DNA of 64,000 nt, from positions 72,082,336 to 72,146,335 of the forward strand of contig NC_068990.1 in assembly GCF_001194135.2 (NCBI RefSeq). The letters run 5' to 3'. The notes under the pieces are model-generated. The model saw only the letters and a list, made by a program, of their open reading frames with translations. It ran no database searches and was not told the DNA's origin. Both the position numbers and the translations under genes were made by a program. The first letter of the stretch is position 1; each line of letters begins with the position of its first letter. The stretch comes from Octopus bimaculoides. Its lineage: Eukaryota. Positions 6,285 to 51,692 of the stretch are shown here, piece after piece.

Positions 6285-6506
6285 AAAACTAATTTCCATC
6301 GCAGTCATACCTTGAATTACCATAACGGTTATCGCGTAGAGAAATTAGTTCAAAGAGGAATTGGTGGAGAAATTCTCGATAAGAACCAGTTGAATGAACA
6401 AGAACTTCAGGAATTGGCCAATTTCCACACCCTACAGACCTATGGTGAACCAAAACCAGCAGCTCCTGATCCTTTTATTCCTGCACATGTCACCTTAAAT
6501 AACAAA
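6285..6506 (+). CDS. EFHC1: EFHC1 internal coding exon (N-terminal region, KTNFHRSHTLNYHNGY...FIPAHVTLNNK)
   Basis: Acceptor ttttcag and donor aaa|gtaagt bound 222 nt, phase 0-0. The translation aligns by eye to EFHC1 KTAFHRSQTLSYRNGY...GIGG...[23 protein letters not shown] and fits EFHC1 better than EFHC2. Confidence 0.95.
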
Positions 6507-6523
6507 GTAAGTTAATTTAGGTA

Positions 6524-6574
<51 letters not shown>

Positions 6575-6905
6575 CATATGTGTGTGTATGTGTCTGTGTA
6601 TGTATATACATATATGTGTATAAATATATATGTATGTGTTCGTGCATAAATTGAGCATATAATCATTAAAATGATTATATCAGTAGCCAGTGTGTAAAAA
6701 CGACCATATTGGTAAAATTAATATTTTAGTATATAATTATAAATATATAATTATAATTATATACTTAAATATATGTGTATACACACACACACATATATAT
6801 ATATATTATTCTCTGTTTCAAATGAATTTTTTGATGTTCTCTTTCTATGTATTCTGTATTTTCTGTTGAGGATATATTATAAACAGTTTTTTTTTTTGAT
6901 TTCAG

Positions 6906-7056
6906 GTTCTTAGATTTTATTGCTTTTTTAAAGAAACTGTGAATGAATCCCCACAGGAATTCTATCGTGTACGACCTTGCAAGATCTACTACTTCATTGT
7001 TGACGATACTATAAGTGTGAATGAACCACCTGTTGATAACAGTGGAATAGCACAAG
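6906..7056 (+). CDS. EFHC1: EFHC1 exon, first half of DM10 domain 1 (VLRFYCFFKETVNESPQEFYRVRPCKIYYFIVDDTISVNEPPVDNSGIAQG)
   Basis: Poly-T tract plus ttcag acceptor, donor g|gttggt; 151 nt, phase 0-1. Carries the DM10 motifs VLRF, YY..DDT and EP...NSG..QG. Not in the ORF track because it has no start codon. Confidence 0.95.
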
Positions 7057-8429
7057 GTTGGTAAAATAGTTCTTGGTTAAGTGCCTTGCTTGATATGCCC
7101 TGAAAACTTTCGTGCAACCTTACAAAATATGTTACTGTTATCTTTGTGACAACTATCCAATGACTACTATCATGGTAAATACAGGTGACACGTCCAGACA
7201 AGTTCCAGTCTTATCAAACCCCATCAATGAAGCATAACCTGCTCTATACATGCCAAGTTATTCATGAGAGAATCACAATATTGATGTAAAAATAATGTAA
7301 ACATGTAGGCATAGAAGTGTATCATAATGGCCGAGGGAAGTCACTTGGAATGTTCCATCTTCACAAAAAAATAACAGTCAAGATAAATATATACCTACAT
7401 ATAGCTATATTTGTGTACCTGTCTGTCTGTCTGTATTAATGTGTGTCTGTATACACACACACGTGCACACACACACACACACACACGAACACACACACAC
7501 ACACACATACACACACACGTCAACCTACAAAATAAGCAGTTGTGATGAATTAGGTATAATTCTTATTTCTTTTTCTCTTCCTTCTCTTAATCCTTTTACT
7601 TTCGCCAGAGTCTCATCTCTTTCTTTTCCTCCATGAGCACCCATCTGACAAAGTATTTATAAAAACTTCATAATATGGTAATTGTAGGAGCAGAAAAGAA
7701 TAATAGTTATACATACAAGATGGAAGAAGAGCACATGCATCCCATTGCCTTCATACAACTGTACATTAATCTAATAATATGAAAAATCTTGCATGATTTG
7801 AAGAAAACACTTTTACATAAGTGGGTAAGAGAAATAACTCACTGATTGCAATTGAAAGGAAATGAATTATACATGAATTGGGTGACATAATCAATGTCAT
7901 GTGTAAAGATTCTTAATTGAAATTTCCTTCTAAATTAGAGAAAACAAATAGGTAATTACAACTGTTAGTCATTTTCAGTGGAAAAGGGAGATAATTTCAA
8001 GAAATTAATGGTTTATTCTCTCATATTTATTTAGATGTTGAGAAAGAATAGACTGATATTTTTTTGCAGACAAGTAATAACAAAGGACATGTTTTGGTCT
8101 ATTTAAGTATATTTACTCAAACCAGCAAAATAGATAGATGTTTACTTATACAAAAAGTTACGTAAATTTTTAGTCAGAATAATTTGTATAGCTAAACACA
8201 GAAAGATCAATGGGAAATAGTTCATATGGGCCAAAGGTGTAAATATAGATAATTAGGTTACAGGCTGCTTAACTGAGTGCTATACACACAAAAATTTTTA
8301 AGCTAATGAAATTTCTTGTGTTGGAGTAGAAAATATAACAACAAAACGTTAAGGGGAAAATAATTTTAAGAAATTAAGAAGTAATTTTTTAAGGTAAGAA
8401 AGAAAACTTGTGTCTTAGTTTACAGACAC

Positions 8430-8900
8430 TATACCAGCCAAAAATATGTATAACTATTTTTCTACACATAAAATTTATCTATTGGTTAGCACACTCATTT
8501 AGTTTGTACTATGCTGATGAGATTTAATAGGCCAAAACATGTCCATAGTTGTCCCTTTGCTACAAACAAATTGAATTTGAGAAATTGTGTGTCTATACAG
8601 ACAGCACACCCATTCATTCAAATACAGAAGAAAACAAAAACTAAATCCCTCTACATTATCAAAGAACATCTGGCAGTTGAATAACCAAGAAATAGATTAC
8701 CATGTAATCAAATGGAGCATAGCTGCAAAGAGAAAGATATACAATAGATTGACAGTAATTGCAGCTTATGAGCATCTGAAAACTTTAATATATCAAATCT
8801 GCTGGGCAGTATCCTAAATAAGAAGGAAGAAACTTACTCTTCTTGTTTACACGAAAGAAAATTCAAGATATAAAGTTTAACGCATATCACTCTCTTAGAA
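8430..8900 (+). mobile_element. Degenerate Penelope-like element (GIY-YIG endonuclease C-terminus)
   Basis: HTHSFKYRRKQKLNPSTLSKNIWQLNNQEIDYHVIKWSIAAK, then after a frameshift SNCSL*...ILNKKEETYSSCLHERKF. This is the H..SF/STLSK.IW.L/Y.I.W.I/C.LC/LN.R.E...C.H pattern of PLE GIY-YIG domains. Confidence 0.8.
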
Positions 8901-9169
8901 ACATTTCAACTATAAACAAGATTAAAAGAATAGTCAAAAGCTGAACCTTTAATCACACAATAATGTTAAATTTCCCATTATTAAAGTAAGTACTTGTATT
9001 AGCTTGTTTGATATATGTGTTTGTCTTCCTACAGGCATATATGTATGTTATTGCTTTGTTCTGATTTGGTTACTGTCTCACAAAGGTTTTAGATGTGAGG
9101 ACTCGGCTGTTAGATGTGAGAACAGCTTTTGGTTACAGCCAAGTAGATTGATTATATTATGGTATATCA

Positions 9170-9995
9170 TCATCATCATCATCATCGTTTAACGTCCGCT
9201 TTCCATGCTAGCATGGGTTGGATGATTTGACTGAGGACTGGTGAAACCGGATGGCAACACCAGGCTCCAATCTAAATTTGGCAGAGTTTCTACAGCTGGA
9301 TGCCCTTCCTAACGCCAACCACTCAGAGAGTGTAGCAGGTGCTTTTACGTGTCACCCGCACGAAGGCCAGTCAGGCGATACTGGCAACGGCCACGCTCGA
9401 AATGGTGTCTTTTATGTGCCACCCGCACAAGAGCCAGTCCAGGGGCACTGGCAACGATCTTGCTCGAAAATCCTACGAAGGCCAGTCAGGCGGTACTGGC
9501 AACGGCCACGCTCNNNNNNNNNNNNNNNNNNNNNNNNNNNNNNNNNNNNNNNNNNNNNNNNNNNNNNNNNNNNNNNNNNNNNNNNNNNNNNNNNNNNNNN
9601 NNNNNNNNNNNAGGGTGTGGCACTTTTTCACACAGCTATCCTCATCCATTCTCACCACATGTCCATACCAGCGCAATCGTCTCTCTTGCACACCACAACT
9701 GATGCTTCTAATGTTCAGCTTTTCTCTCAAGATACTTACACTCTGACGGGTATTCACATCCAACGGAGCATACTGGCTTCATTCCTTGCGAGCTTACGCA
9801 TGTCCTCAGCAGTTACAGCCCATGTTTCACTGCCATGTAGCATGGCTGTTCGTACACATGCCTCATACAGTCTGCCTTTTACTCTGAGTGAGAGTCCCTT
9901 TGTCGCCAGCAGAGGTAAGAGCTCTCTAAACTTTGCCCAGGCTATTTTTTTCTCCTGTTCATTATTACTAACAATCTCTCTCACACACACACATC
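9170..9995 (-). mobile_element. 3' end of RTE-clade LINE with 3' UTR and (GAT)n tail
   Basis: Minus-strand AWAKFRELLPLL...KGRLYEACVRTAMLHGSETWAV and RRLRWYGHVVRMDEDSCVKKC. The UTR ends gcatggaaagcggacgttaaacgatgatgat and is near-identical to 63650-64000. Confidence 0.9.
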
Positions 9996-10374
9996 ATGAT
10001 ACGTGTTTCATGTCACTGAGATCTTCAGGTGAGAACTGTTACAACTTGGTGATGGTGATGTATTTATTGGTGTAGATATGATTCCATGCTTGTGTCTGTT
10101 TAATATCTGGTTTTTACACTTGCTGATTGGCTGTTATTTTTGTGTTTTTTCACTGATTATTTTTAGATATGGAGGTGTGATATTAATTTGCATATCCATT
10201 GCAGATTTAATAATCTAGTTAAAGTCGTTCTTTTGTTAATTTTCTTTTATTGCATTGTGTTTTCACATGTTATGAGATTTTTAAAGGTGTCTGTGAGTGA
10301 GTTGGTGTGAAACTAATTAAGGATGGTTCTATTTATAGAAGATGATTCATGGCTGAATGGTTTTCGTATGACTC

Positions 10375-10670
10375 ATCATCATTACCATCTTCATCGTCAT
10401 TGTTGTTGTTGTCATCATCGTTGCCGCTGTCAACATTTAGCATCTGTTTTCCATGCTGGTATGGGTTGGATGATTTGACAGGAGCTGACAAGCCAGAGAG
10501 GTGCACTAGGCTCTATTTGTCTGTTTCACAATGGTTTCTACTGTTGGATGCCCTTCCTAATGGTAACCACTTTACAGAGTGTGCTTGGTACATTTTACAT
10601 GGCACCAGCATGGGTGCTTTTCACGTGGGACTTTTGCTGGTGCTTTTGATGCATGGGTGCTTTTTACAAG
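10375..10670 (-). mobile_element. Older copy of RTE-type 3' tail
   Basis: tttccatgctggtatgggttggatgatttgac...gttggatgcccttcctaatgg, collinear with 9190-9350. Confidence 0.75.
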
Positions 10671-11129
10671 TGTTTGTGTTAATTCAATGGGAGTGACTAT
10701 TTCAAATGTGGTATGAGACTAGTCATGAGATGAAAGTTCATTTTCAATAGGCAATATGTGTGTGTATGTGTGTGTATGCATGCATACATGTGTGCAACAA
10801 AATATGTGTGTGTGCAACAAAACCTTCAGAAACTAGAAATACTTGAACAAGTAATACTCTTATCAGAATTAGAATCTCAAGAAGGACAATCATGCAATAT
10901 CAACAGTAATATTTATACAACAAATATGTACACAATAATATGTATACAACAAAACCACTGTAAGCCAAGGAACCAAGAACCATTATTATATAGGTCTAAT
11001 TTGACTAGAACTAGAATTTCAATGAAGGGCAACTTAGAACCATGAGGATACAAAATAGAAAAGTTTCACAGTCAACAAGCACATCATATATGTACACGTA
11101 CATATATATTATATAAAGTATATATAGGA

Positions 11130-11342
11130 TGGCATACTGGCAGAATCGTTAGCATGTTGGGTGAAATGCTTTGCAGTATTTTGACTGTCTTCACGTTCTG
11201 AGTTCAAATTCTACTGAGGTTGAATTTGTCTTTCATCTTTTTGAGCTCAATAAAATAAGTACGAGTTGAGTGCTGGGGTCAATGTAATTGACTTACCTTC
11301 TATCCCAAACCTGCTGGCCTAGTGCCAAACTTTGAAACCATT
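11130..11342 (+). mobile_element. Full-length Deu/Nin-type tRNA SINE
   Basis: ggcagaatcgttagcatg head, B-box, Deu/Nin core, and tail ggcctagtgccaaactttgaaacc. Confidence 0.8.
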
Positions 11343-12084
11343 ATATGAAATATATAGACACACACAGATATATGTTTCTATCTATCTATCTATCTATCCA
11401 TCTCTCTCTATCTATCTATCTTATCTATCGATCTGTCTATATATTTATGTTTATATTATCATCATATGATGTGATAAATATTTATTGTTATGTTGTCTGA
11501 TGTCTGATATCATTAATTATAGCTTGCTTTTGACAATGTGGTAATTGTCTTGTTTTGTCATTTTAAAAAGTAAAACAATAATCATGAATTGTTGGCAATT
11601 GTTGAAAATCACTTGTAATGTCTTTGCCAAATTTTTTATTACAACCTAAACATAGAATTATCTGTAGAATGATAGTGGAAAGCTCTATGAAATGTTTCTT
11701 AATGTTATCTCTCTGAAATAAGCAAAGGATGAAATGTCTGGTGGTTTTAAATTATATCCCTTAATGATCAGCTCTGACTTTTGCCTTTTCAGCATTGATA
11801 AAATAAGTACAGGGGCATGTATGTGTGTGTGCATGTGTATGTATGTATGTATGTATGTATGTATGTATGTATGTATGTGCATGTGTGTGTGCATGCGTGC
11901 GTACATGTGTGTGTGTGCATGTGTGTGAGTGTGTATGTATGCATGTATGTATGTATGTATGTATGTATGTATCTATCTATCTATCTATCTATCTATCTGG
12001 TGGGATGAGTAAATTGTCGCCATTTTATATTTTTAATTTTGCACATGCACATTGTTTGTTCTTGATTTTGTTGACTACACAGTA

Positions 12085-12790
12085 CAGTAGGGTCAGTTGG
12101 GCACTGTCTTTGGGAAAAACAGGACCATGATGCAATTCACTCTGTCAGAAATTTGGAAACGACATGCTGTACTGTTTGGCATTCACACTGGAAGCTCCAA
12201 TATGAACATTTTAGTGTTGGGTGTCAATCTGAGGACATGCACCGGGAGTGATAAAAATCAAACATCCAGTCAACATCATGGTGTTTGGAGTGATCACTAG
12301 TGATGGTGATGTTATGCCTCCATTCATCTTCCCACATGGCCTCAGACTCAACATGGAACCCTACATTGAATGCCTGGAGACGGTAGTGCTGCCCTGGGTC
12401 AAGTGAGTGGCTGCTGGAACACCCTATCCCTGGCAACAAGACTCTGCACCATGCCACATAAGCAGGAGAACCCAGTCATGGCTGTTGGACAATTTCTGTG
12501 GTCACATCACCCCTAACATCTGGCCACCTAACTCCCCACACTTGAACCCCATTGATTATTATGTGTGGGGTACAGTTGAGTGAGAGACCAAGAAAACTCT
12601 TTGTAACATCAAAGATGAACTGAAGGGAAGGATTATGGCAGCATTCACCAACTTAAACAAGGTGACCATCCAGAAGAGTTGCAGGAGATTTTGAAGTCGT
12701 CTAGAGGTCGTGGTTGAAGCCAATGGCGATTTTATTGAATAAATTTACTGTTTAGTATTTCAATATATTTTTATGAAAATGAGATGTACA
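12085..12790 (+). mobile_element. Internally deleted Tc1/mariner transposon, maT (DD37D)-like
   Basis: HPVNIMVFGVITSDGDVMPPFIFPHGLRLN...WQQDSAPCH...WPPNSPHLNPIDYYVWG...RLEVVVEANGDFIE* with in-frame stops. TIRs were not resolved. Confidence 0.85.
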
Positions 12791-12911
12791 GGTGCCAGTT
12801 ACATGACACCAGTTACATGACACTTGGCTTGTTGGGTCTTCTCGAGAACAGCATATAGCCAAAGATTTTGGTCACTAGTCATTGCTTCTGTGAGGTCCAA
12901 AGTTTGAAGAA

Positions 12912-12944
<33 letters not shown>

Positions 12945-13416
12945 CTAATATAATATAATATAAAAATTGATATAAACAGTTAGGTGCAATATAAAACCAT
13001 AAAGGAAAACTTTAATCATTGCTAATTGTAACTGAGGATGCTGAAGCACCTATATCGCAAGAAATAAGAGTTAAAATCTCTTAATTCTGTATAAAGCACA
13101 CAATATATATACACTGACAGAGGAGATAACCACCCCAAGAACGACTCCATTGATCACTGGACTAGACTAGTTTTGCCTATCAGTCATAGGCTCATCAGCA
13201 GTGACTACTCAATTGCTCTATATTTTGGCTAAATCGGACTATCAGTATATATATTTACCATATAGATTTATGGCTGATTTAGCAAAATGCTAATATGTAT
13301 ATTAAAAATTAATATAAACAACTATATGTGCGTGTGTGCGCATGTACAATTGACTATACAGCTTTTGGAAAATGCAATCTGTGTAAATTTTAAAAATCAA
13401 TGTTATTTCTCTGTAG

Positions 13417-13553
13417 GTCCATTTTTGAAACGACAACAAATTCCTAAGAATGATCAAAAGGACATTTGGCACTGGACAGATCTGAACATTGGTGTTGATG
13501 TGACATTTTTTGGTCGTACATTCCATATTTATGACTGTGATGTCTTCACAAGG
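13417..13553 (+). CDS. EFHC1: EFHC1 exon, second half of DM10 domain 1 (GPFLKRQQIPKND...WHWTDLNIG...FGRTFHIYDCDVFTR)
   Basis: Acceptor ttctctgtag, donor agg|gtttgt; 137 nt, phase 1-0, restoring frame with the previous exon (151+137=288 nt). Confidence 0.95.
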
Positions 13554-13809
13554 GTTTGTTTCATTCTTTCATTTACTACAATTCTCTCGAATGATTATTA
13601 TTTGTTCATTTTTTCTCAAGAGTTATTTCATTTTGCTTAATTTACCAAAGATTTTGTCTTTCTGAAATGCAGATTATTAAATATCATACAAAATATTATT
13701 TTGAAGTTTGCTTTCCTGATTCATATCCTTTTTCTCTTATATTGTTCTCACAAGGTATGAATATCTAGGATTACGCTAAATAATTTCTTTTTGTCTCGTA
13801 TGGTTTCAG

Positions 13810-14037
13810 AACTTCTTGGAGAGTGAAGGAATTGAAGTTAATGCAAAGGAAGAAGTGCCCATTGATCCATACATTGACAATCGTAGGAAAGCAAACCTGC
13901 AAAAGACATACACTGCACCATCAGAATTTGATAAGCTCAAACAATTCTTAGAAATGGACCGCAAAGTATTGCGTTTCTATTGTATCTGGGATGATAGTAA
14001 AAATATGTTTGGAGAGATAAAAGAATACATCATACAT
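13810..14037 (+). CDS. EFHC1: EFHC1 exon, DM10-1/2 linker and start of DM10 domain 2 (NFLESEGIEVN...DKLKQFLEMDRKVLRFYCIWDD...EYIIH)
   Basis: Acceptor tttcag, donor cat|gttagt; 228 nt, phase 0-0. Matches EFHC1 FLESQGIE...DPY...FDQLKQFL..DKQVLRFYAIWDD. Confidence 0.95.
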
Positions 14038-25015: not shown

Positions 25016-25345
25016 TATTACCTGTCTGATGACACACTGGAAGTTCGAGAAATCCACAATGAGAATGATGGCAGAGACCCTTTCCCTGTCCTTATAAAAC
25101 GTGACAAAGTACCCAAAAACCGCAACAATGTTCCCTCCACATACCCAGCCATCTCATTGGAACTCACTACCCATGAAGTCAGGGAATACGTCACTCCACC
25201 AGACTTTGTCATAGGTAAAACCGTCAATATATATGGCCGTGTCTTTCTTGTCTATGACTGTGATAACTTCACCAAGGCTTATTACAACAGACACTTTGGT
25301 ATCACAGATTTCACTCCCCTTGATGTGAAACACTTGCTTCCAAAG
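25016..25345 (+). CDS. EFHC1: EFHC1 exon, DM10 domain 2 (YYLSDDTLEVREIHNENDGRDPFP...DFVIGKTVNIYGRVFLVYDCDNFTKAYY...HLLPK)
   Basis: Acceptor attttctag, donor aag|gtaagt; 330 nt, phase 0-0. Strong DM10 motif match (NDGRDPFP, YDCD.FT). Confidence 0.96.
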
Positions 25346-25394
25346 GTAAGTATTTTTATACTGTGTGTTTTGATTTGTTGAATAAATGCAGTGA

Positions 25395-25740
25395 ACCAGC
25401 AGTATCATTGGCATGCTTGACAAAATACTTAGCGACATTTTTTCCAGCTTCATATTCTGAGTTCAAATTCTACTGAGGTTAACTTTGCCTTTCATCCTTT
25501 CGGGGTTGATAAAAAGTACCATTTGAACACTTGAGGTGGTGTAGTGAACAAGCCCTCTCCCACAAGATTTCAAGCCTTGTGCCTATAATAGACAGAATTA
25601 CTTATGTTAGGGCAGTAGAACTGCGAGTGTGGTGGACAAAATATCTTGTGGTGTTTTAACTCCCTTTATTCTAGTTTGAACTTCTACTGAGCTCCACTTT
25701 GCTTTTAGTTTTTCTAAAAGTGGTGAAACAAAGAACCACT
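25395..25740 (+). mobile_element. Two tandem Deu/Nin-type SINE copies
   Basis: ttctgagttcaaattctactgaggttaactttgcctttcatcctttcggggttgataaaaagtacc followed by a more decayed copy. Confidence 0.75.
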
Positions 25741-27099
25741 TAAGTATAGTATTTGACAAAATAAAGTACCGTTCAAATACCACAGTTAATTAAATAAAAT
25801 ACTCTTCGTGTACTGGGGTTTGATATAATCAACTATAACCATGCCATTGTTACAAACATCATTTGGATTTTCTTACCTTTGATGATTATTTGTTTATGTC
25901 TATGGTTAATTCAGCTCATTGAGATGCTGAAAATTTATGACTGCCTGAATTACTCAAGGCACAAGGAAATATAGCCTTCTCCAAGATCTCTAGTTAGGCT
26001 GTACTTGTTCATAAGACCTTTGATCTGATATATAAGATAACCTATTTTTGCCATACATGCAACTCCAAATCAAAACATTGTTATTATCATGTTTATACCT
26101 TATTGAAATTCATAGCCTACATTTCAATTAATTTTGCAATTAACGAAGAATTTAGCAAACTAACTTTATCATAATTAAGCTGAGGTTTGGAACATAAATC
26201 AACATGAAATTTTGATGGATGGTTTTAATGTGGATCACTTTAAATAGGAAATTTGTATCACAGAACCAAGGGGGGGGGGGTCTCATGCAGTTTGGTATCA
26301 GAATGCTAAATGTCTGATTTATACACTGTAGGAGGAATTCTTTCAGTGTACAATTTTGGACATGCTCTCAACTATCAGAGCTGAACAAGTTAAATTCTAA
26401 TTTATCTAACACTAGACTTTTTACCAGTTTCACATTTTAAGTCCTCATGCTGCTGGATTATGCTGGTACATTGATTTTTCAGAGAAATACACCAGTTTTA
26501 TATACAATTTGTCCCACAAGTTGAGGCCTTGTACTTATGCTAGAAATAATTACATGTTAAATGGTTTTCGTTGCTCAGTTTCCAATCAGGACTGATCAAG
26601 AAAACCTATGATCAAAAATATTCCAGTTGTAGCTGTTATTGTCTATTTTGCTTTTGTTCTCCAAATACATATACTGATTAAATAATTAAAAAAAAAAACA
26701 ATTAAATTGGAGCAATGAGCAGTCATGTCTGTGTGGTGAAAACATAAAATCAATGCAAAGCTGTTGCTATTGATTTGATCCATGTTTTACAGCTTCATTG
26801 AACAAGATTTCCTGCACGCATTCTTGATGATAGACATTCCAGCCATGACATACCTGTTATTTTTCCCAATCTCATCCATCCTATTTTAAAACCAGTTAGG
26901 TGTGATATGATGAAAATATTGCTGCTATTTCTAACAATTTGAGTGACTCATTGACTTTAGGTTCTAATGTTGGCTCATGGTTCCATGGTAGCTCAGTTTA
27001 AGTCTACAGACTCACTCCCTCATTCTTATGGCTCCCCTTGCTGGCTTCTACCCATACATTGGCTTAGAATCCACTCAGTTGACTGTACCTCACTATTGA

Positions 27100-39847: not shown

Positions 39848-39870
39848 AGACATGTGAGTGTATATATCTA

Positions 39871-39915
<45 letters not shown>

Positions 39916-39964
39916 GTCTATCTATTTACCTGCCTATCTATCCATCTATATATCTGTCTCTCCA

Positions 39965-40011
<47 letters not shown>

Positions 40012-40327
40012 GTATACACACACACATGCACGCACACACATACATGATACACATGCACATCATGCACACTCAAACATATGTCATGAATAACATAATAAAA
40101 ATGCAAATACAGTTACACAATAAAGAGCTTCTGGATAACTCATTCAATTTCTGATTGAAGAGCAAAAACTGATGTGAGAAAAACTGGTAAACCATGTAAT
40201 TAATATAGAATCATATAATAACATTTGAGGATTAAGATTATATTACAGAAACATTTGAGGAGTATTCTATCTATGTATGAGGAATGTAATCCTAACATTA
40301 TACTGAATGAGAATTTTAATCTTACAG

Positions 40328-40459
40328 GAAGACACAACTGCCCCAACCAAAAGAGTCGCTGTGACATACACTACTCCAGCTCCTCCACAATTCGCTCAAC
40401 CAGATAATTCGCATATGAGTGAAAATGACAATGTAACTTTGCGGTTTGAAGCAATCATG
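40328..40459 (+). CDS. EFHC1: EFHC1 exon, divergent linker and start of DM10 domain 3 (EDTTAPTKRVAVTYTTPAPPQFAQPDNSHMSENDNVTLRFEAIM)
   Basis: Acceptor cttacag, donor atg|gtaagt; 132 nt, phase 0-0. The last 16 residues align to EFHC1 KMLVNDNKVLRYLAVL; the first ~28 do not align. Confidence 0.85.
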
Positions 40460-40654
40460 GTAAGTATAGCTTTTCATAATTTTATGTTGTTGTTGCAAAG
40501 TACAGGATTCTTTCCTCTCCTGACCAGTTGAAGATTTGTATCCCATTATTGCTAAATGATGTATTTTCACGACAAATACATTTAACTCACAACTGGTGCA
40601 GCTAATTTTGCTGTAAATAGAGACTATGCAGAAATGTAACTTAATTTTAACAGA

Positions 40655-41400
40655 CTAAAAAGAGGGATCTTCCAGGAGATAGAACAGTGGGACAAGAGGG
40701 GTTTCCATAGGGTGTATATGACCGTAGTGGCCAGACAACATCTGCTGTTGATCTCCGGGGTCAGGTCTCTGTTGGTGAGTTTGGAACTTAGGTAGCTGAA
40801 AAAGCTGACAAACTCCATGACATTTGGGCCAATATGGAGATGGGGAGGATCTGGGCCATCACCAACATGCATCAGCTTTGTCTTCACCCAACTCACCCAA
40901 AGGCTATCTGCTCCACATCTATAATGCATCAGTCCTCTCCATTCTCATCAATGGAGCAGAAACGTGGTCTCTCTCAAAGACCCTGGCAAAGAGGATCAAC
41001 GGCTTCAATAGCAGAGCCCTGAGAACCAATGAGAAAACAAGATGGTACCATCATGCTTCCAACAGAGAACTGCATGTGTGCGTGCACCAACCTCCAGCCT
41101 CCCACCTCATAGCAGTTCATCCTGTGTGCTGGTACAGGCATGTCCCCCACCCTGTCTCCCACTAGATCATCCTAGTTGGGCTTTACTCTCATTTGATGCA
41201 GCAGCTGCAGGCTTGAAGAGGCCTTGTGGCAGGCCCTACACCAGATAGCTAGACGTGATTGGGGAACATCTCCAGAGGATTGACATCCCCTTGAGGGATG
41301 CCAAGTAGCTGGCACAGGACCAACAGTGATGACAGTACCGATGGGCCTGATCTGATCTATGCATAACGACAACTCTGGAAACACTAATTTGGAATGACGC
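40655..41400. mobile_element. RTE-clade LINE fragment with 5' inversion
   Basis: Minus strand 40655-40915: LWVSWVKTKLMH...EFVSFFSYLSSK...EINSR...LWKPL...ISWK. Plus strand from about 40916 continues IYNASVLSILINGAETWSLS...RINGFNSRALR. Consecutive ORF segments in opposite orientation. Confidence 0.85.
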
Positions 41401-41653
41401 ATGTATTTCAATGTATTTGAAGATTGTTTTGGAATTATAAAGTTCTAGAAATTTTCCATCATGCGACCATCTTGGGTGAATGCCTTTACTATTATCTGAA
41501 ATCAACTTGATCCCTGCATACGAAACTATGTAGCTGGACACTGTGCAGAGCCTGTCAGATAGTGAAAACTTGTAAACAGAAAATAAAACTTGTAAAAAAT
41601 CGTAAACCCAGGATCTCATAAAGTGGGCCATCGTAAAGTGAGGTATTACTGTA
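41400..41653 (+). mobile_element. Possible pogo/Tigger terminal fragment
   Basis: Ends cgtaaagtgaggtattactg|ta, resembling a Tigger-type TIR plus TA target (from memory); the other end was not found. Confidence 0.45.
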
Positions 41654-42059
41654 CTTTGTAATAAAGGGTTTTGTAATATAGAATCAGTTTCAAATGGATT
41701 GCTCACAAGGTCAGGTCAGGCCAGGTGTGTGTGTGTGGGGGGGGCATGTGTTGTTGTAGTGTGTTGCTGCATTTACCATTTGTTGGTATATTCCTGTGTC
41801 CTCCCAGGAAACACATCAAGCAGAGTGCCAGTCAGTCTCCATATCTGTGAGATACTTCCTCATTTGCTGTGACTATGTAACATGTGGTTGACCAACAGGA
41901 GCTGTCAGCCCAGTCAGATTCTCAGTGAAGAGAACACAGTAAACAGAGTCTAACTCAGAAAATCAACCAAATAGTCTGCTTGCAGGACATGATTTTATTT
42001 CGCATAAAATAGTTGCTAAAATAAAAATTGTAGTAAAAACAAAAAAAAATAAAGGATTA

Positions 42060-42440
42060 TTCTTATTCTTTCATTCTTTTACTTGTTTCAGTCATTGGAC
42101 TGCAGCCATGCTGGAGCACCACCTTGACACACAGGACTTATTTCTTAAACCTAGTACTTATCCTATAGGACGCTTTTGCTAAACTGTTAAGTTACAGGGA
42201 TGCAAACACATCAACACTGGTTGTCAAGCAGTGATGAGGAGACAAACACAGACACAAAGACACACACACACACACATTTTTATATGATAGGCTTCTTTCT
42301 GTTTCCATCTACCAAATCCACTGACAAGGCTTTGGTCAGTCCGAGGCTATAGAAGAAGACACCTTCCCAAGGTGGCATACGGTGGGACTAAGGCTGAAAC
42401 TACGTGGTTGGGAAGCAAGCTTCATACCACACAGCCATAC
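42060..42440 (-). mobile_element. Full-length tRNA/CORE-like SINE with central microsatellite
   Basis: Minus-strand head gtatggctgtgtggtatgaagcttgcttcccaaccac..caccttgggaaggtgtcttc and tail ggtgctccagcatggctgcagtccaatgactgaaacaagtaaaaga. Sits immediately upstream of the DM10-3 exon. Confidence 0.85.
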
Positions 42441-42504
42441 ATTTTATTAATTAATTAATTTATTTATTTATTTATTTATTTATTTATTGTCTTTTGTTAA
42501 TCAG

Positions 42505-42799
42505 GATAGTGTCATGGATGAGAATAAAGGTCGCCGCTTTATAATCACTTATCACCCAGCAGATCAGAGGATTATGGTTCATGAGCCACCTTCTAGAAAT
42601 TCTGGCATTGTAACTGGAAAGTTCCTTAATTTAATGAAAGTTCCCAAACCTAACCACGACCCTGAAAACCCCATCTACTATGGTATACATGACTTCTATA
42701 TTGGAGCAAAAATTGACCTTTTTGAACACAGATTCATCATTACCAATGCAGATCTATTTGTCTTGAAATATATGGAGGCACATAAAGACCAATTTTCCA
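42505..42799 (+). CDS. EFHC1: EFHC1 exon, DM10 domain 3 (DSVMDENKGRRFIITY...EPPSRNSGIVTGKFL...DFYIGAKIDLFEHRFIITNADLFVLKYME...QFS)
   Basis: Acceptor ttaatcag, donor a|gtaagt; 295 nt, phase 0-1. Matches EFHC1 RRFVFSY...EPPVRNSGIIGGKYL...DFFIGAVIEVFGHRFII...YVLKYME. Confidence 0.96.
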
Positions 42800-46306: not shown

Positions 46307-47551
46307 AAATATGAAAAACATATAGCATCTGATACAGATGTTTAATGTGTAATGTTTTCATATTTATAAAGTAATGCAAGTTAATTATATATTGTGTGGG
46401 CTACTGTTGGTTTTAGGGGCTTAGTTTTCAGACCCTGTTTATATTCATATGTTATAAAGGTGAGAAATATTTTGAAACTGTATTTTCTCCAACTCTCACT
46501 TTCATTAGTGTGAATAGCTTGCCCTCAAGAGCTGTGAATTTATTTGTTCCTACCAAAGTCACAGAGAAAAAAAAACATAAAATATTTGAAGTTGAAGCAA
46601 GGAACCCCCAAACAAATAAAGGTGAAAATAATAGGTATTAGGGGAGGGGAAGGTAAGTGTTGGGCAAAGTAAATATAAAAATTAAGTAGGTGGAAAAAGG
46701 AAGGAAGAAAGTTAGAAAGTTAGAAAAGAAAAATGTGAAGATGATATGAGATGAGACAGTAACATATGTAATTCTAATGAGACAAAGATGATACTTCCAG
46801 CTGTTTAATAAATCTTTTTCAAAATTTCTGATTTACCAGAACACTTCTGATCTGTTGTTTAAATAAAAGTCACATTGATGAAAGCTTTTTAGGATTGTTT
46901 CTTCTCTTCTATGTACAACCTGCATTTTTTACTTTCATTTCAGGATTTTTCATTTATTAATATAGATTGAAGGTTTCCTTTTGATTGTTGGGTGTAGTGT
47001 GTCTATTTACTAACGTTTGTTTTATCCTGTAAATGAAGATGCATGATTATAAAATTTTTGTTTAAATTTTCCATCTTTCATTCATATGCAACACTTACAT
47101 ATTTCTTTCAGATTATGTTTTATAGACATGGTGCCTACCTCAAAAGTTATTGCTTCCACATCACAGAATTTGTTTAGTGGGTATATATTAGAGCTCCTGC
47201 ATCAAAATGTGCTTTGGGCTTCTTTTGGTGTTTGTTTTTCATATTTGAGGTGCAAGTATGGCTAATTTAAGATTGCTCTCTTTAAAAAGTTTCTACATCT
47301 ATAGTCAGAGAGAAGTGCTTGTCTGTTAAAGTTAGGAAGTTTCTTGCTGTAGTATATTTTGTATTAAGTGAAAGAAGTTACAAACCACATAAGGTTCGCT
47401 TTGCTGTCAGTTCACTAAGCTGTCAATTCATCAGGCTGTTCACTTATCTGTCACATCATTTAGCCATTGCCTTAATAGTGGCATACCCATAGTTACATTA
47501 TTTACATTATCTACATTTGACGGATATTCGTCCTCATCTTGTTTGTTGTTA

Positions 47552-47595
47552 ACACAACGTTTCGGCTGATATACCCTCCAGCCTTCGTCAGGTGT
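47552..47595 (-). ncRNA. Minimal type I hammerhead ribozyme (inverted copy)
   Basis: Exact reverse complement of 48068-48111. Confidence 0.85.
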
Positions 47596-47657
47596 CTTGG
47601 GGAAATTTCGAACCTGGGTTCTCATTCCTATCGATGTTACTATTATTATTATTATTA

Positions 47658-47688
<31 letters not shown>

Positions 47689-47974
47689 CAGGTCGCTGCC
47701 GTGAATCGAACTCGGAACCTTGGGGTTAGTAGCCCGCGCTCTTAACCACTACNNNNNNNNNNNNNNNNNNNNNNNNNNNNNNNNNNNNNNNNNNNNNNNN
47801 NNNNNNNNNNNNNNNNNNNNNNNNNNNNNNNNNNNNNNNNNNNNNNNNNNNNNNNNNNNNNNNNNNNNNNNNNNNNNNNNNNNNNNNNNNNNNNNNNNNN
47901 NNNNNNNNNNNNNNNNNTTAAGAGCGCGGGCTACTAACCCCAAGGTTCCGAGTTCGATTCACGGCAGCGACCTG

Positions 47975-48005
<31 letters not shown>

Positions 48006-48067
48006 TAATAATAATAATAATAGTAACATCGATAGGAATGAGAACCCAGGTTCGAAATTTCCCCAAG

Positions 48068-48111
48068 ACACCTGACGAAGGCTGGAGGGTATATCAGCCG
48101 AAACGTTGTGT
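48068..48111 (+). ncRNA. Minimal type I hammerhead ribozyme
   Basis: acac-CTGACGA-a-ggctg(gagggtatat)cagcc-GAAA-c-GTT-gtgt: CUGANGA and GAAA cores, 5-bp helix II, 4-bp helix I, and palindromic AACGTT helix III typical of PLE-associated minimal hammerheads. Confidence 0.85.
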
Positions 48112-48212
48112 TAACAACAAACAAGATGAGGACGAATATCCGTCAAATGTAGATAATGTAAATAATGTAAATAAGTCCTCATCTCTTAAATATAGAACTA
48201 TACCCATAGTTA

Positions 48213-49330: not shown

Positions 49331-51692
49331 CTGATCTTGAGTTTAGCTGGATATTGGCAATATATGTCAGATCATTGAGAATGTTAATGTTACCTGAGAT
49401 AGACTGGCATCCTTTCCAGGTAAAATATTAATTTCTCATTCCCTTAATACCATGAAACAAGAGGTAATTATAGTATACATATTTACAGCTTGACTGATTG
49501 GTCAGATATATTCTTAGCTTATAGCCAAAGCAACCAAACGTATGTGAAGATGAACAAAAATATTGACCCACCACCCATCACCAAATAGTCCAATACTCTG
49601 TTGATCTGGCCAGTTTGTCTTTCATTGTGATGCATCTTCTTAATTGTCAGATTCTTTTCTTTTGTCATTCTAGGCTCTACTATCCAGTCTATGAAGGACA
49701 ATATCAAAGTATCTAATAAGAATTTTGATGACAAGGTTCCATTCAAACGATCGTGAGTATTTTAACCTTTACAAATTCTTTTATTTTTCCATTGGTTTCA
49801 TTTAACCACCACCACCGCCACCGCCGCCACCGCCACCGCCGCCACCGCCGCCGCCGCCGCCACCGCCGCCACCACCACCCTATCTTGTACTCTAACAGTT
49901 CTGTCTATACACTGTTTAAACAACTCCAAAAGGATGAATTTCAAATTTGACCTTAGTGAGAATTGAACTCATAGCATTAGAAGAAATACTGTAAGACATG
50001 CAATCCAATGTTCTAAAGACTTTGTTAATCTATCAACATATATGACCAAAGATATTTGGACCTTGACCAACCTGCCTTTTGTGAAGTATCATGTTATCTA
50101 ATTGATTGACAGATATATACACCAATCAGCAAACAGGTTTGTTTGCTAAAATTACAAAACAAAGCTAGTGGATTGTTTAGGCTCAAAGGACTGGTGGGTA
50201 CTTCAGGTTGACAAGACACATGTTGAAACACAGGTATCCCAGAATCCTTTGCTCTTATGAGCTGAGTGTGTTATGAACCCACTGTCAATGTAAAAGGAAG
50301 AAGTTGTTCTATGACATTTATAACAGAAGCTATCATCTGTATTTGAATCTGCTGGAAGGCATCAAAAATAGATATGCAAATTGTAGTTTATCAAATGAGT
50401 CCTCCACATTAAAAACAAAAACAGAACCAAACAAAATGGTAGTTTGATATTTGAGGGAGGTTTGGCTGCTATTTCTTGCAGGTTGAATGAACATATTTAG
50501 AAGCTTTGTGACAAACACTAGTATAACACAATAAATAATATGTTCACCACAGCTGTCTGAAGACTGATTGAAGATTAAATCAGCTCCGTTAAATATGTAA
50601 CATGCTCATCATATTATATGCATGCTTATATGTGTGAGTGTGTGCACATGCATGTATATGTGTATGTGTGTATGTTTATACATGTATTGGTGTGAATATA
50701 TGATGTCTTTTATTTTCTTTTTGTTTCCATGCAGTTCTGAATAATTTATGAAGGAGATTTATCAAGCAGCTTGTTTAGGAGTTGATTGATGCAGTTTATA
50801 GACATATTCTGTTTTATCTGCAGTAATTTACAATATATCAAATAAAGTATGCCTGGAGTAGAGTACTGTACTGTACAATGCTCACATTGTAAAGCAGCAT
50901 TGAGAAGCTGGGTGCATTATCACCTAACAGATATGATATGTGAGTCTGCCCAGGATTATTCAGAATGAACTTCGTGGACAAGGGAAATGTGGTATTTTGT
51001 CATTTTGGTCACACTGACTTAAGAATAATTTATATTCTATACATGCACATGACGTATAGATAAATGGACACACACACACACACACACATATGTTCAAACA
51101 TACAAAGATATGTATGAATGTATAATATTTTTTATTAACTGAGAATGCCCAAACAGTTGTTAAATGGACTAGAGAGAGTTTCATGTTAAAGCATTTATCA
51201 ACACACACATGAACATACACACACACACACACACACATACACACACAAATACCTACCTACCTACATACATAGATACGTATGTGTGTGTGTAATATATGTA
51301 TGTATGCATGTATGTATGTATATGTGTGAATGTCTGTGTGTCCTTGCCATATCACATGATAACTGTCAATAAGAGTCACTGTCACAAGCAAAGTCATTCT
51401 CTGTAAGAACATGTCTGGTTATTGAGAAATATTACATTGCTTGGAAACAGGTAAGGGTTGGTGACAGGAAGGGCATCAGAAAATCTGCCTCAAATAAACT
51501 GCAACCAACCCATGCAAGCATGGGAAATTGGATATTAAAAGATGATGATGATGGTGATGATGATATATAAGGTGTATTCTGTTAGAAATGTTGTAGAATA
51601 CAAAATAGAGCTTGTTCATTCTTAGAATTACCAAATAGTGTTTATTAAATAGCTGTCTAACCATACTCCTTCTTTTTACTCAATTTTCTCAG

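Follow-up and report, generated by a model that had tools for sequence, protein, structure and literature searches.

The window, a 64-kb stretch of Octopus bimaculoides DNA analysed here as a whole, holds the EFHC1 locus with the gene on the + strand, and is interrupted by 11 N gaps. EFHC1 lines the inside of cilia and sperm-tail microtubules and, with RIB72, counts among the core proteins inside the doublet microtubule of cilia; human EFHC1 is linked to juvenile myoclonic epilepsy. The identity of the locus was given by a draft protein drawn from the open frames, which matched EFHC1 proteins across animals; the 90% cluster of the best match includes the RefSeq protein XP_014774088.1 (P0122, O. 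bimaculoides, 667 aa), and this protein is 100% identical (tblastn) to the exons readable in the window.

The upstream exons, placed by tblastn of P0122 and by their splice sites, lie at 6285-6506, 6906-7056, 13417-13553 and 13810-14037 (+; approximate bounds, spanning 6285 to 14037) and code for DM10-1 together with the N-terminal region and for the first part of DM10-2. The C-terminal half of DM10-2 is carried by the exon at 25016-25345 (+; 330 nt, bordered by tag and gtaagt), which is 100% identical in tblastn to P0122 residues 263-372 and closes with ...GITDFTPLDVKHLLPK, where the linker that joins DM10-2 to DM10-3 starts. Two linker exons, at 27589-27699 and 40328-40459, are followed by the DM10-3 body exon (DSVMDENKGRRFIITYHPADQRIMVHEPPSRNSGIVTGKF...) at 42505-42799 (+; 100% to P0122 residues 454-552, donor adjusted by hand) and by a downstream exon (STIQSMKDNIKVSNKNFDDKVPFKRS) at 49674-49752 (+), the latter set by P0122 mapping and splice sites. 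The readable DNA of the window shows neither exon 1 (MEGLPFIPGNSFRDPT) nor the two EF-hand exons, and the gene runs past the window ends or into gaps. Two entries of the N-run list fall in the linker interval: a gap of 335 N at 33867-34201 and one of 778 N at 38353-39130.

Linker exons of the octopod gene

The exon at 40328-40459 (+) is 132 nt long, is bordered by cttacag and gtaagt with phase 0 at both ends, and belongs to the RefSeq model XP_014774088.1; its translation is EDTTAPTKRVAVTYTTPAPPQFAQPDNSHMSENDNVTLRFEAIM. Its last 16 codons (40412-40459, HMSENDNVTLRFEAIM) align to canonical ...KMLENDHKVLRFEAIM and give the first beta strand of DM10-3; the linker exon of Lottia matches the window at 40385-40459 (tblastn, E=5e-4), with only a residual PQ..D match, from 40385, upstream of this kept third. 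The diverged 5' two-thirds (40328-40411, EDTTAPTKRVAVTYTTPAPPQFAQPDNS) stands, in translation, in place of EIPPYNxFGSxEDSLQSCLSLIPQPPKKDF, and 15 of its 28 residues are T, P or A. The preliminary description of this DNA, made from its letters, had given the exon phase-0 ends, an aligning last third and a T/P/A-rich run of about 28 residues, and all three features were confirmed by the splice sites and RefSeq model, by the tblastn match and by the residue count, respectively.

In Lottia and Lingula the canonical linker is encoded by one 47-codon phase 0/0 exon, EIPPYN...RFEAI[ML], which follows an exon ending in ...PKM; in Saccoglossus the linker is joined to the upstream exon, and the 3' boundary is unchanged. 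The exon at 40328-40459 agrees with the Lottia and Lingula exon in both phases, opens with E, closes with M and can be aligned with it from PQ onward; by position it is therefore the orthologue of the ancestral linker exon of 47 codons (EIPPYN...RFEAIM) seen in these two relatives.

The interval first read as the intron upstream of this remnant contains a further coding exon, RAGPEPTTVTKTVPEDYKKTDKTFQSQTAAAADEPRM, at 27589-27699 (+; 111 nt, 37 codons, phase 0/0), which is flanked by cttgcag and gtatgt and encodes P0122 residues 373-409. The earlier gene model was thus right about the exon at 40328-40459 and had overlooked this one, and probably a second as well; the linker is consequently longer than in that model, not shorter. 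The new exon is octopod-specific: it is 79% identical to its counterpart in O. sinensis and has a homologue in Argonauta (L001 4930-5043), with the pattern R.GP.P.T.TK.V in common. Its first 19 residues, which hold this pattern, are about 50% identical between Octopus and Argonauta, as against about 15-25% in the remaining linker, a hint that a new element here is under constraint and that the stretch is not just slack. Neither linker exon has a further copy within the window, and no evidence was found that the new exon originated from a repeat element.

A second extra linker exon, of 17 residues (NLEE[NT]CERPERAHVPGM), occurs in the 685-aa proteins of O. sinensis and O. vulgaris and is also carried by Argonauta, with NCE.PE common to O. 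sinensis and Argonauta. Neither the O. bimaculoides RefSeq model nor the readable + strand DNA at 25346-42504 contains this 51-nt exon; it may lie in the gap at 33867-34201 or in that at 38353-39130, or be missing from O. bimaculoides. DSCERPE at 37314-37294, the one string with some likeness to the 17-residue exon, is on the minus strand and was taken as a chance occurrence.

The EFHC1 gene of Argonauta hians (L001; 8.4 kb, zero N) has the same layout as in Octopus: a DM10-2 exon ending in ...DVSHLLPD is followed by RVGPVPKTMTKKVDKEFEKPVAGQGSTKNAQPSAR, by QGETPHIVTKQNCEAPEGFDPEQSVAALNKQAG and then by a 33-codon remnant, QSAGEIVNPSAEDKEIVCACDPENIALRFEAVM. Aligned as DNA to the Argonauta gene, the window interval gave the DM10 exons and microsatellites only, and none of the linker exons. 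The gene ranges of O. sinensis and Sepia pharaonis EFHC1 are 133 kb and 227 kb, respectively. Exon usage as described here is that of the gene models of four species.

Conservation of the linker and search for its motif

The PPYNxFGSxEDS motif is absent from the O. bimaculoides EFHC1 protein, and all four available octopod proteins (O. bimaculoides, O. sinensis, O. vulgaris and Argonauta) are without it. In an alignment of 125 EFHC1 proteins (121 non-octopod and 4 octopod), a regular expression for the motif was positive in 119 of the 121 non-octopod sequences, the remaining two differing only trivially (SLQDS, SLEDT). PP[YF]xG[FWY]GSEEDS is likewise present in 120 of 120 EFHC2 proteins, the best matches of a profile search that retrieved at least that many, and the motif is found in human EFHC2, Chlamydomonas RIB72, Tetrahymena RIB72A and RIB72B, and sea-urchin Rib74. 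The mean frequency of the top residue in the EFHC1 alignment is 0.83 over the linker exon versus 0.67 over the whole protein; the DM10-2/DM10-3 linker is therefore among the better-conserved parts of EFHC1, and we found no paper that gives it a role. Against a profile HMM of the linker the octopods score 2.5-11 bits versus 85-112 bits for canonical EFHC1, a motif-half HMM has no match in the octopod proteins, and octopod EFHC1 does not fit the pattern PP[YF]xG[FY]G[ST]xEDS...P.PPKKD[FY].

The closest non-octopod relative is the EFHC1 of the cuttlefish (P0002, whose 90% cluster includes the Sepia/Acanthosepion pharaonis protein CAE1325732.1), which is 64% identical to the octopod protein outside the linker. 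Unlike the octopods, it has kept the canonical linker KMEIAPYNGLGSIEDSLMSCVSLLPQPPRKDYVKMMENDHKILRFEA, including APYNGLGSIEDS. Octopus and Argonauta are both Incirrata and cuttlefish belong to the Decapodiformes; this distribution places the linker change on the octopod stem, after the decapodiform split and before the split between Octopus and Argonauta, as far as the sampled sequences tell. At a larger scale, about eight others of 150 representatives of the wider family (50% identity) are without the motif half, so that motif loss is rare but recurrent across eukaryotes and not unique to octopods. Proteins of this kind include the EFHC1 of the medaka Oryzias melastigma and RIB72/EFHC-like proteins of two chytrid fungi, Phalansterium, Platysulcus and two further sources (P0209, P0241, P0254, P0294, P0170 and P0281), in which the PPYNGFG half is absent and the ...KD..K.LEND..LRF end is kept.

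The Oryzias melastigma protein (XP_024147728.1, P0189) resembles the octopod proteins in the absence of the motif, only the linker end ...NLENHNKVLRY remaining, but its linker is shortened rather than expanded, and NDGRDPFP and EPPVRNSGI are not kept; the protein may have decayed independently, or its gene model may be poor. In the Nucella lapillus model P0027 (697 aa), KDFIKMLENDHKVLRFEAVICVVLCCGV occurs three times in tandem within the linker, which looks like an assembly or annotation artefact.

Motif-coding DNA was sought in the window by three methods. Four regular expressions gave no match on the + strand at 25346-42504; tblastn with three linker exons (Lottia, cuttlefish and consensus) found nothing in the window beyond 40385-40459; and a 22-position profile HMM of the motif half, which as a positive control scored 32-55 bits on canonical EFHC1 and EFHC2, gave negative scores in all six frames of the whole window. 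Restoration of the motif by A-to-I editing was rejected, as A-to-G changes cannot, by our reasoning, make EIPPYNxFGS from EDTTAPTKRVAV. The preliminary description had held that the segment is strongly conserved in EFHC1, EFHC2 and Rib72, that the octopus linker has lost it, and that no PPYNGFG-coding sequence exists in the readable DNA between 25345 and 42505; all of this is borne out, the conservation extending, with the two variants included, to 121 of 121 EFHC1 and 120 of 120 EFHC2 proteins and to RIB72.

Domain content and modelled structure of the octopod protein

Outside the linker the protein has the expected composition. P0122 contains three tandem DM10 domains (Pfam PF06565, three stretches, E=5e-101), as do the Argonauta and cuttlefish proteins, and a C-terminal EF-hand pair (PF13499, residues 602-664), which is also found in Argonauta. 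In both sequence and fold, the best matches of octopod EFHC1 are canonical metazoan EFHC1 and sea-urchin Rib74 (7UNG, 7RRO, 8I7O, 8SNB), with which it shares the three DM10 domains, the C-terminal EF-hand pair and a similar length; exon positions are common to octopod and lophotrochozoan EFHC1. The best structural matches of the AlphaFold2 model of O. sinensis EFHC1 are EFHC1/Rib74 chains of doublet microtubules (E ~1e-58 to 1e-45), but TM-scores stay low, since the free model lacks the extended arrangement of the bound state.

The difference from canonical EFHC1 is concentrated in the linker, where the 35-residue core PPYNxFGSxEDSLQSCLSLIPQPPKKDFIKML is gone and a stretch about twice as long, predicted to be disordered, takes its place. 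Octopod linkers are 77-97 residues long versus 47-48 in canonical proteins, their hydrophobic share is 0.16-0.21 versus 0.33-0.34, and their share of disorder-promoting residues is 0.72-0.78 versus 0.57-0.60. In the O. sinensis model, linker residues 379-458 are nearly all below pLDDT 50, the sole structure being a three-residue helical turn at 387-389, and DM10-3 begins with a strand at 465-472; the cuttlefish model, built from the same alignment, has linker helices at 388-396 (IEDSLMSCV) and 407-413 (DYVKMME) with pLDDT 49-63. Composition and models together suggest that the octopod linker is probably disordered or floppy.

The linker also diverges faster within octopods: identity between O. 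bimaculoides and O. sinensis is 78% within the linker as against 93% in the rest of the protein, and between Octopus and Argonauta it is 28% as against 63%. Outside the linker, the identity to eleven outgroups is 0.55 and 0.50 for the octopods versus 0.60 for cuttlefish, by which measure octopod EFHC1 seems moderately faster-evolving than cuttlefish EFHC1 there too.

Among more distant relatives, human EFHC2, Chlamydomonas RIB72 (6U42), Tetrahymena RIB72A/B (8G2Z) and the Trichomonas protein (9D5N) are alike in their three-DM10 architecture and luminal position. Unlike octopod EFHC1, EFHC2 and RIB72 have kept a recognisable motif (PPYNGFGSEEDS, PPFNGYGTIEDS, PPYNGFGSEADS); the RIB72-like protein of Trichomonas vaginalis (9D5N chain CW) carries the variant PPPSLIGSDEDT / PPPSLIGSDEDTLRSCISLHPKPAPKD, in which the aromatic Y and F are replaced and the acidic residues and PKPP are kept.

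The preliminary description had also counted the PY..GFG segment among the short motifs proposed to bind the microtubule lumen, which is not supported in that form: the PYG and GFG modules are defined in other proteins, PYG (a P-Y-G loop after a short helix) in FAM166A-C, C10ORF82 and FAP129/222/252, and GFG (a repeat of about 31 residues with G-F-G) in EFHB, CFAP77 and FAP21/77, and EFHC1 is listed under DM10 only (Andersen et al. 2024, PMC10973386). Neither the PYG nor the GFG signature occurs in the octopus linker. The likeness of the EFHC1 PY..GFG segment to these modules is a lead, not established membership.

Remodelling of the linker and alternative readings

In doublet microtubules of other species, DM10-1, DM10-2 and DM10-3 bind protofilaments A01, A03 and A05, and in Tetrahymena the region of the DM10-2/DM10-3 linker is contacted by another inner protein at A04 (PMC8742875); at 16-nm intervals EFHC1 alternates with EFHC2, and the two contribute to anchoring the tektin bundle (PMC8595878, PMC10663601). 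The gene structure, the loss and its taxonomic spread, the intact DM10 and EF-hand domains and the predicted disorder are shown by the results above. From these we hypothesize, with good though not full confidence, that the exon at 40328-40459 is a genuine exon of a single EFHC1 orthologue whose DM10-2/DM10-3 linker was remodelled, on the way to the incirrate octopods, from a docking strap into a tether. Of the ancestral 47-codon linker exon only the part coding for the first strand of DM10-3 was kept; its first two-thirds diverged beyond recognition, and with them went the PPYNxFGSxEDS motif and two helices, SLQSCLSL and PQPPKKDFIKML. One or two new phase-0 exons were added in the upstream intron, so that a highly conserved segment of 47-48 residues became a polar, low-complexity segment of 77-97 residues. 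Octopod EFHC1 would still sit in the A-tubule lumen, held on A01, A03 and A05 by its three DM10 domains; where the strap crosses A04, a sequence-specific docking element would, most likely, have given way to a flexible tether, and the contact of the canonical linker with A04 or with a partner may have been lost or replaced. The canonical linker is called a docking strap here because it is conserved.

The loss itself could be challenged on two grounds, both foreseen in the preliminary description. One is that it reflects an artefact of assembly or annotation, a canonical PPYNGFG exon being hidden in the gap at 33867-34201 or in that at 38353-39130 and spliced in; the two intronic gaps amount together to 1113 N, and the short exon known in O. 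sinensis and O. vulgaris does lack a place in the readable DNA. In Lottia and Lingula, however, the motif shares its exon with ...LRFEAIM, and this exon is readable here and is T/P/A-rich instead, so that any canonical exon inside a gap could only be a second copy. Moreover, the gap-free Argonauta gene contains no motif-coding sequence by tblastn or profile HMM, and the O. sinensis and O. vulgaris models, which come from chromosome-sized records (110 and 118 Mb), are likewise without the motif. Given the readable remnant of the same exon and the motif-free Argonauta gene, a hidden canonical exon is very unlikely, to the point that we attach almost no weight to it. The other ground is that the gene is a divergent paralogue and that the canonical EFHC1 orthologue lies elsewhere in octopus genomes. 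The evidence on orthology comes from protein matches, a profile and a tree, and octopus EFHC2 is not among the matches: a profile search for EFHC2 returned no cephalopod sequence in its best 120, in which vertebrates and other invertebrates predominate. Still, the best matches of the octopod protein are all EFHC1, and no other Octopus cluster occurs among the best 120 of 1108 matches, for which three Octopus species are among the sources. A search with a profile of the octopod linker region gave no further octopod sequences or transcript contigs, the query's own proteins being unlisted as well. In a neighbour-joining tree of 585 columns (linker columns left out, EFHC2 as outgroup, three octopod proteins), the octopods have 100% bootstrap support, as does their grouping with cuttlefish EFHC1 inside EFHC1; cephalopod-specific residues are common to the octopod and cuttlefish proteins, and the intron positions agree with those of the lophotrochozoan EFHC1 gene. 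The octopod protein is thus placed as EFHC1 and not EFHC2, a second EFHC1 copy in octopods appears unlikely, and an orthologue elsewhere is highly improbable.

Granted that the change is real, its meaning may differ from that proposed above. If constraint had been relaxed, octopod EFHC1 would be decaying and the linker change would be the first visible sign of a loss of function. The somewhat lower identity of octopods than of cuttlefish to outgroups outside the linker is compatible with this, and the medaka EFHC1, in which the motif is absent and the DM10 core motifs are degraded too, indicates that such decay occurs. The octopod gene, by contrast, has an intact reading frame in four species of two families, retains the DM10 core motifs NDGRDPFP and EPP.RNSGI and three DM10 domains that are strong in Pfam, reaches 93% identity outside the linker between two Octopus species, and has preserved the splice phases of its new exons; decay is accordingly an improbable account, if a less remote one than a paralogue. 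A gain of function may be ventured somewhat more readily, though it too is doubtful: RxGPxPxTxTKxV, at the start of the exon at 27589-27699, would dock a different luminal partner. The contrast between the Octopus-Argonauta identity of this element and that of the rest of the linker speaks for it, as does NCE.PE in the second new exon of O. sinensis and Argonauta; against it, the comparison covers two families and a short stretch only, and the AlphaFold2 confidence is low throughout the linker. In its strongest form, which we put forward only as a speculative proposal, the incirrate octopods would have rewired the A-tubule lumen, with the RxGPxPxTxTKxV and NCExPE linker as a lineage-specific docking module for a different partner or surface. 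If so, the module would replace a contact otherwise fixed from green algae to mammals, and octopus axonemes would be a natural experiment on the role of the DM10-2/DM10-3 strap.

Octopods have motile cilia and flagellated sperm and are without the conserved segment, which shows that there is at least one setting in which it is not needed; the octopod linker also provides a naturally occurring variant on which structural and swap experiments could draw. Our literature search found no paper combining EFHC1 with octopus and none containing PYNGFG, and the protein sequences are already public, so that only the observation on the linker appears to be unreported. On the evidence of the compared sequences, we regard the octopod linker loss as a real lineage-specific variant of a well-known protein.

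Some features of the window are independent of the linker. Nine intronic open frames were scanned against Pfam, which was uninformative for eight of them; the ninth, at 12407-12580 (+), has a sub-threshold DDE_3 match (E=0.009, 16 bits versus a cut-off of 28.6) and is probably a decayed transposon. Open frames at 47521-47742 (+) and 47921-48142 (-), on either side of the N gap at 47753-47917, have an identical 74-residue translation on opposite strands, so that the DNA flanking this gap forms an inverted repeat, whether through an artefact of assembly or as a hairpin-like repeat element.
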